Shown one piece after another: positions 3,593 through 3,615 of a stretch of 64,000 nucleotides of DNA. The position numbers and the translations under genes are program-made. The notes under the pieces were generated by a model, which ran no database searches, was not told the origin of the DNA, and saw only the letters and a list, made by a program, of their open reading frames with translations. Position 1 is the stretch's first letter. Each line of letters opens with the position of its first letter. Source of the DNA: Auanema rhodensis (Eukaryota; Animalia; Nematoda). Where the stretch lies: assembly GCA_964057225.1 (NCBI GenBank), contig CAXKVF010000003.1:118657-182656 (forward strand), given 5' to 3'.

Positions 3593-3615
3593 AGGGTAAA
3601 ACTAACCTGTTTTAC
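3593..3615. other. Left attachment-like site: 18-bp direct repeat with GTAAAAC-TAACCT-GTTTTAC inverted arms
   Basis: 3596-3602 GTAAAAC and 3609-3615 GTTTTAC are exact reverse complements around a 6-bp spacer. Confidence 0.8.

Follow-up and report, generated by a model that had tools for sequence, protein, structure and literature searches.

A 20-base motif at the edge of a 28S rDNA insertion in the nematode Auanema rhodensis fits a tyrosine-recombinase attachment site, with an 18-base staggered-cut duplication as a possible alternative

The analysed window, a stretch of 64,000 nucleotides from Auanema rhodensis (assembly GCA_964057225.1, contig CAXKVF010000003.1, positions 118,657 to 182,656), is filled by tandemly repeated eukaryotic rDNA whose rRNA is encoded on the minus strand. 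One of the 28S copies is interrupted: its 3' part stops at position 3610 and its 5' part restarts at 14566. The intervening element of 10,955 bp (3611-14565, plus strand), referred to as e1, is AT-rich and has no terminal inverted repeats, the longest end-to-end inverted match amounting to only 7 nt. It is flanked by an 18-bp direct repeat that had been described in an earlier note on this DNA and was located at 3593-3610 (left copy, 28S sequence) and 14566-14583 (right copy), both given for the plus strand. The insertion lies in the peptidyl-transferase region of the 28S gene, and a fold of the target reproduces helix H93. In the rRNA sense, the insertion site precedes the sarcin-ricin loop by approximately 40 nt and falls at H93 and the central peptidyl-transferase loop.

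The genes of e1 are intron-rich and run antisense to the rRNA, which also applies to e2, a second element family found at the same site (see below). Two paralogous small intron-bearing genes (4628-5144 and 7141-7768) are likewise present in both. A Pfam search of the e1 open stretches detected no reverse transcriptase, transposase or endonuclease, and a search for non-LTR hallmarks found neither a reverse transcriptase nor an A-tail nor a 5' truncation series. With neither terminal inverted repeats nor a transposase, e1 does not qualify as a DDE cut-and-paste transposon, and with no reverse transcriptase, 3' tail or variable 5' ends it does not classify as a non-LTR retrotransposon. An internal segment resembling the right end (4108-4144) was ruled out as a further right-end site, having just 9 bases in common with the junction core.

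The long gene of e1 combines recombinase-like and SET-domain exons on the plus strand. An open stretch at 11562-11702 contains an exon with the conserved motif ENGQRxEV, which harbors the candidate Arg-I, and a second one at 11731-11868 includes an exon with PFPxNK and thus the candidate Lys. The following exon (12086-12268) carries S-I-R-N-S-A, with the candidate Arg-II and a Met in place of the usual His, as well as A-H-S..T-H with the candidate His-III, and is succeeded by a GTGAG donor at 12269. After the acceptor AG at 12424-12425, the next open stretch (12426-12630) opens with I-Y-L-T-D and the candidate catalytic Tyr. Joining A-H-S-L-K-T-H-V-K to I-Y-L-T-D in phase 0 places this Tyr nine residues past the His. 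The C-terminal exon of the SET domain belongs to the same gene and is found in the open stretch at 13296-13457 (PF00856, 23.5 bits, above the cut-off).

Three diverged paralogues of this recombinase-like-SET gene occur in the genome (L061 at C12:49478, L062 at C31:99731 and L063 at C8:5498229 of G000), with 37-43% identity in an exon-by-exon comparison. Together with e1, they retain the order R..K..R..H..Y in the form of ENGQRxEV, PFPxNK, [SA][IV]RN[SA]A, G.M.H[SN]..H and a Tyr at the beginning of the next exon. At the motif level, the Arg-I box is invariant as ENGQR[NP]EV in all four genes and reads ENGQRSEV in L069, a relative from another organism. The candidate Lys motif reads PFP[ML]NK in the paralogues and PFLYSK in L069. 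The H-x-x-R box has an invariant Arg, and in place of its His there is Met in e1 and Arg, Arg and Leu in the paralogues; the His itself is present in the natural relatives P0001 and P0002. Relatives in other organisms (L069 and L070, from Logan SRR31479242 and SRR21069290) have short introns and the canonical box.

All protein tests were performed exon by exon or with natural database proteins. Searching a profile of the His/Arg exon against 1.84 billion proteins gave only four matches at E 0.001, i. e. three short Logan proteins and one repetitive protein. Two of these matches, the natural relatives P0001 and P0002, derive from Logan assemblies of other organisms; both have the canonical H-x-x-R box, and in both the segment from His to Tyr runs without interruption. 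For the longer one, P0001, the top Pfam family is PF00589 (Phage_integrase), aligned in register over profile positions 71-165 but scoring only 14.9 bits, below the cut-off of 27.1 (E 0.023). Moreover, hhalign against the DIRS recombinases of this genome brought the H-x-x-R box into register (P 0.025). A Pfam search of the individual e1 exons returned no recombinase match, PDB sequence searches gave nothing usable, the ESM Atlas returned nothing, and a fold model was unusable at a pLDDT of 45. Judged from the conserved motifs and from profile matches below significance, the product of the long gene is probably a tyrosine recombinase. The PF00589 matches of the genome itself were rejected as e1 relatives, as they belong to unrelated DIRS-like retroelements; about 30 of these (L052-L056, on C1, C6 and C8 of G000) contain uninterrupted Phage_integrase ORFs of 300-438 aa next to ORFs resembling reverse transcriptase and RNase H.

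At the left junction, the earlier note had pointed to perfect inverted 7-bp arms around an asymmetric 6-bp spacer, and these can be read directly from the sequence: GTAAAAC (3596-3602), TAACCT (3603-3608) and GTTTTAC (3609-3615), with fully complementary arms, form a 20-bp 7-6-7 dyad (3596-3615, plus strand). The last five bases of this candidate core site (3611-3615) are contributed by e1. The note's empty 28S site with a 5/7 arm match, GTAAAAC-TAACCT-GTCTCAC, was recovered as well, namely at five empty sites (22104, 30498, 43842, 49003 and 57396) and as the identical core of the right junction (14569-14588, plus strand). Inverted arms around a spacer of 6-8 bp are therefore present in both the target and the element partners. 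When dyads were ranked over all registers with spacers of 6-8, the 7-6-7 dyad came out on top in the target (5/7), e1 (7/7) and e2 (6/7). Both elements deviate from the target solely at the two mismatched arm positions, always toward complementarity, and every one of these differences is C to T.

How much weight this motif can bear depends on its background frequency. Perfect 7-6-7 inverted repeats occur 36 times across the window, six of them within 3561-14620. With random element ends, a perfect dyad with 7-bp arms (spacer 3-10) spanned the junction in 1.3% of trials, while an element starting exactly with TTTAC arose in 0.11%. Taken alone, the dyad is hence suggestive rather than compelling. 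An rRNA hairpin as the source of the target's partial palindrome proved wrong, as the fold shows H93 pairing differently. A metagenome scan for junctions retrieved only native rRNA variants reading CTTAC. Since these metagenomic LSU rRNAs (L071-L084) carry CTTAC in the H93 loop on this strand, the arm variant of e2 is also a natural rRNA variant.

The earlier note had further proposed an extra arm-like copy. The sequence in question, TCAGTAACAC at 14548-14557 (minus strand), is indeed a 9/10 inverted match to 3609-3618, yet it is nothing special: it forms half of a 16-bp quasi-palindrome (14540-14555; consensus GTTACTAATTAGTAAC) that occurs 15 times, exclusively in the interior of e1 between 3744 and 14555, and was therefore given no separate weight. 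Arm-like matches with at most one mismatch number 18 in the window versus 7.9 expected, many of them in repeated rDNA copies. The copies of the quasi-palindrome are often paired 22 bp apart, for example at 12318-12355, within the intron that separates the His exon from the Tyr exon.

Further copies were sought in the genome, which comprises 181 Mb in 112 contigs. The genome contains four copies of e1 that are 100% identical at both ends, and thus stem from array amplification rather than from independent insertions; as identical array duplicates, they were rejected as independent junctions. The second family, e2 (9.2-9.6 kb), occupies the identical 28S site in the same orientation and provides at least 30 left and at least 32 right junctions on the genome contigs (for example from L013:8664 to L014:7843, i. 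e. G000:C10:20664-29843, and on about 30 other contigs). The e2 repeat also measures exactly 18 bp, with both edges lying 2 bp further along than in e1. Hence, e1 and e2 have an invariant 16-bp core in common that is likewise found in 28S and includes the left arm and the TAACCT spacer as well as the two bases with which the right arm begins. The junction comparison among copies that the earlier note had suggested thus reveals an invariant core in both families, although the four e1 copies do not count as independent. A core count of 686 translates into about 650 28S genes, of which approximately 0.6% carry e1 and 5% carry e2.

Several related loci were encountered in this survey. Non-rDNA relatives on C8 (near 4.42, 4.44 and 9.59 Mb) were set aside as rearranged fragments with no clean ends; among the sequences on this 27-Mb contig is a degenerate 28S fragment (L018:6850-7084, i. 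e. G000:C8:4438850-4439084), in which an e2-like left end is followed by a deletion into 28S. The repeat unit of a second rDNA array (G000:C8:10976429-11887869) measures 6,567 bp, as opposed to roughly 8.4 kb for the array of the window. At C71:5466 and C8:11442650, the right junction reads A|GG, which may point to a third element type.

The two families resemble each other in a short left terminus and in three blocks of about 90% identity, while their right ends are unrelated. Owing to the common left-end sequence, e1 and e2 are not fully independent. Terminal inverted repeats, a reverse transcriptase and a transposase are missing from e2 just as from e1. The gene of e2 encodes a short zinc finger-SET protein that is devoid of the middle part of the e1 gene product and of the enzyme. 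Its SET exons are near-identical to those of the full-length C12 paralogue but only about 35% identical to those of e1; combined with the e1-like blocks, this identifies the elements as mosaics, and in terms of sequence e2 resembles a C12-type element that has undergone a deletion. These relationships bear on the possibility that a single ancient insertion, of unspecified mechanism, multiplied in the rDNA array through gene conversion and unequal crossing-over before it diverged into e1 and e2. What distinguishes the junctions would then be C-to-T changes that a longer original duplication acquired afterwards, with the recombinase-like gene being cargo or inactive. The uniform direction of the arm differences would follow from such a history, as would the perfect identity of the four e1 copies at both ends, the highly similar blocks and the left end. 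The loss of the H-x-x-R His in all four paralogues of this genome also agrees with an inactive gene. Still, such an origin seems quite improbable to us: e1 and e2 have unrelated right ends, their genes are only about 35-40% identical versus about 90% for the left blocks, which implies exchange between separate elements, and conserved, seemingly intact members of the gene family exist both among the paralogues and in other organisms.

A different alternative is raised by the repeat length. Another interrupted 28S copy of the window hosts a non-LTR element of 4,933 bp (31191-36123; RVT_1 at 8.9e-26) with an ORF of 1270 aa on the minus strand (31489-35301). This retrotransposon resides in the R1/R4 region of 28S at a distance of 661 bp from the e1 insertion, and it, too, lies between two copies of an 18-bp duplication. 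Conceivably, the repeat around e1 is a true target-site duplication that arose from two nicks 18 nt apart, for which some endonuclease, retrotransposon-like or of another kind, would have acted in trans, with the dyad being coincidental at a chance of about 1%. A fixed stagger would predict exactly what e1 and e2 display, namely 18 bp in either case with a 2-bp offset at each edge, and a supply of the enzyme in trans would suit the abundant e2, whose short gene encodes none. On the other hand, e1 revealed neither a reverse transcriptase nor an A-tail or 5' truncation series, the site of the resident element is unrelated, and no autonomous element of the required kind appeared among the junction types found with restrictive search patterns. 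In addition, the full-length members encode a recombinase-like protein, and the element bases past the repeat still resemble the target. We regard duplication by a staggered cut as possible, albeit rather unlikely.

We favour, with a probability that we would put at about one half, placement of e1 and e2 in 28S by a tyrosine-type site-specific recombinase, with the repeat representing shared sequence. According to this attachment-site reading, e1 and its enzyme-less sister e2 would be integrative DNA elements in the peptidyl-transferase region of 28S, and the full-length family members would encode the recombinase as part of a fusion protein, between a zinc finger and a SET domain. The 18-bp repeat would be common to the element attachment site and the 28S site instead of consisting of newly synthesised DNA. 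Strand exchange could then occur somewhere within the 16-bp core, most likely with the 7-6-7 dyad as the core site, whose asymmetric spacer TAACCT would set the orientation. The uniform orientation of e1 and e2, the lack of any other mobility signature, the dyad ranking, the conserved motifs, the profile matches and the precedent of nimaviruses (see below) support such a mechanism. That the recombinase is active, that the element passes through a circle and where the strands are cut are inferred; the assembly contains no circle or tandem junction. A point against it is that equal 18-bp repeats with a 2-bp shift are a coincidence under an attachment-site model.

The proposal of the earlier note that the 18-bp repeat reflects attP/attB identity hence survives as the favoured explanation, but not as an established one. 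Its geometry is real, the core is invariant and a probable tyrosine recombinase is encoded. It falls short of being established because the e2 repeat has the same length of 18 bp with a shift of 2 bp, the recombinase match lies below significance, the resident retrotransposon also makes an 18-bp duplication and the extra arm belongs to an abundant internal palindrome. In short, the 20-base motif fits a tyrosine-recombinase attachment site, and sequence by itself does not separate this from an 18-base staggered-cut duplication.

If the dyad were a true core site, it would belong to a compact integrase system that operates site-specifically in an animal and targets a universally conserved rDNA sequence. 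To our knowledge, rDNA parasites have so far been described almost solely as retrotransposons, in addition to the piggyBac element Pokey. The site would offer a defined 20-bp substrate for direct biochemistry, and it would explain how enzyme-less relatives of 9.6 kb came to occupy about 5% of the 28S genes of this genome. A more far-reaching and doubtful extension would be an animal integrative family that combines a fusion of tyrosine recombinase and SET domain with a lox-like core of 20 bp, situated in the sequence of the ribosomal catalytic center. Its members would integrate and excise as circles, swap cargo modules with other elements in the same genome and act in trans on derivatives that have no enzyme of their own.

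Among known systems, loxP, FRT and dif consist of inverted arms around an asymmetric spacer of 6-8 bp that is identical in both partners. The candidate site of e1 has the same arm-spacer layout, but its arms comprise 7 bp and match at only 5/7 positions in the target. R-type non-LTR retrotransposons (R1, R4, RT) resemble e1 in their fixed 28S site and orientation and in their long duplication, whereas e1 and e2 harbor neither reverse transcriptase nor endonuclease and carry intron-rich genes antisense to the rRNA. Cryptons are tyrosine-recombinase DNA transposons without terminal inverted repeats, whose short direct repeats are read as shared recombination sequence. They are not known to us as rDNA-specific, and their usual repeats span 4-6 bp; the absence of terminal inverted repeats unites them with e1, a likeness by description for which no sequence relation was found. 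Fungal Starships with their Captain tyrosine recombinases carry cargo, are bordered by short direct repeats and in some cases target rDNA, but they are fungal elements, much larger than e1, and their recombinases belong to another family.

Tyrosine recombinases and Cryptons are both absent from a 2024 review of transposons in rDNA (PMC10946416). The closest published case is provided by the crustacean 28S-integrating nimaviruses (whispoviruses PajaWSV and PotrWSV), which encode multi-exon tyrosine recombinases (PMC10871703). Their 28S insertions occur at one conserved motif with an 11-12-base repeat that the authors read in a recombinase context, and related nimaviral recombinases of telomere-inserting members contain a C2H2 finger (PMC10871703). 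The profile search against 1.84 billion proteins retrieved no nimaviral relative of the e1 exon. Both systems reside in animal hosts at a single conserved 28S motif, and the nimaviral motif abuts the e1 repeat in the rRNA sense. Yet, the crustacean nimaviruses have viral genomes that span hundreds of kb, while e1 and e2 are non-viral elements of 9-11 kb in a nematode, with a recombinase-like gene fused to a SET domain.
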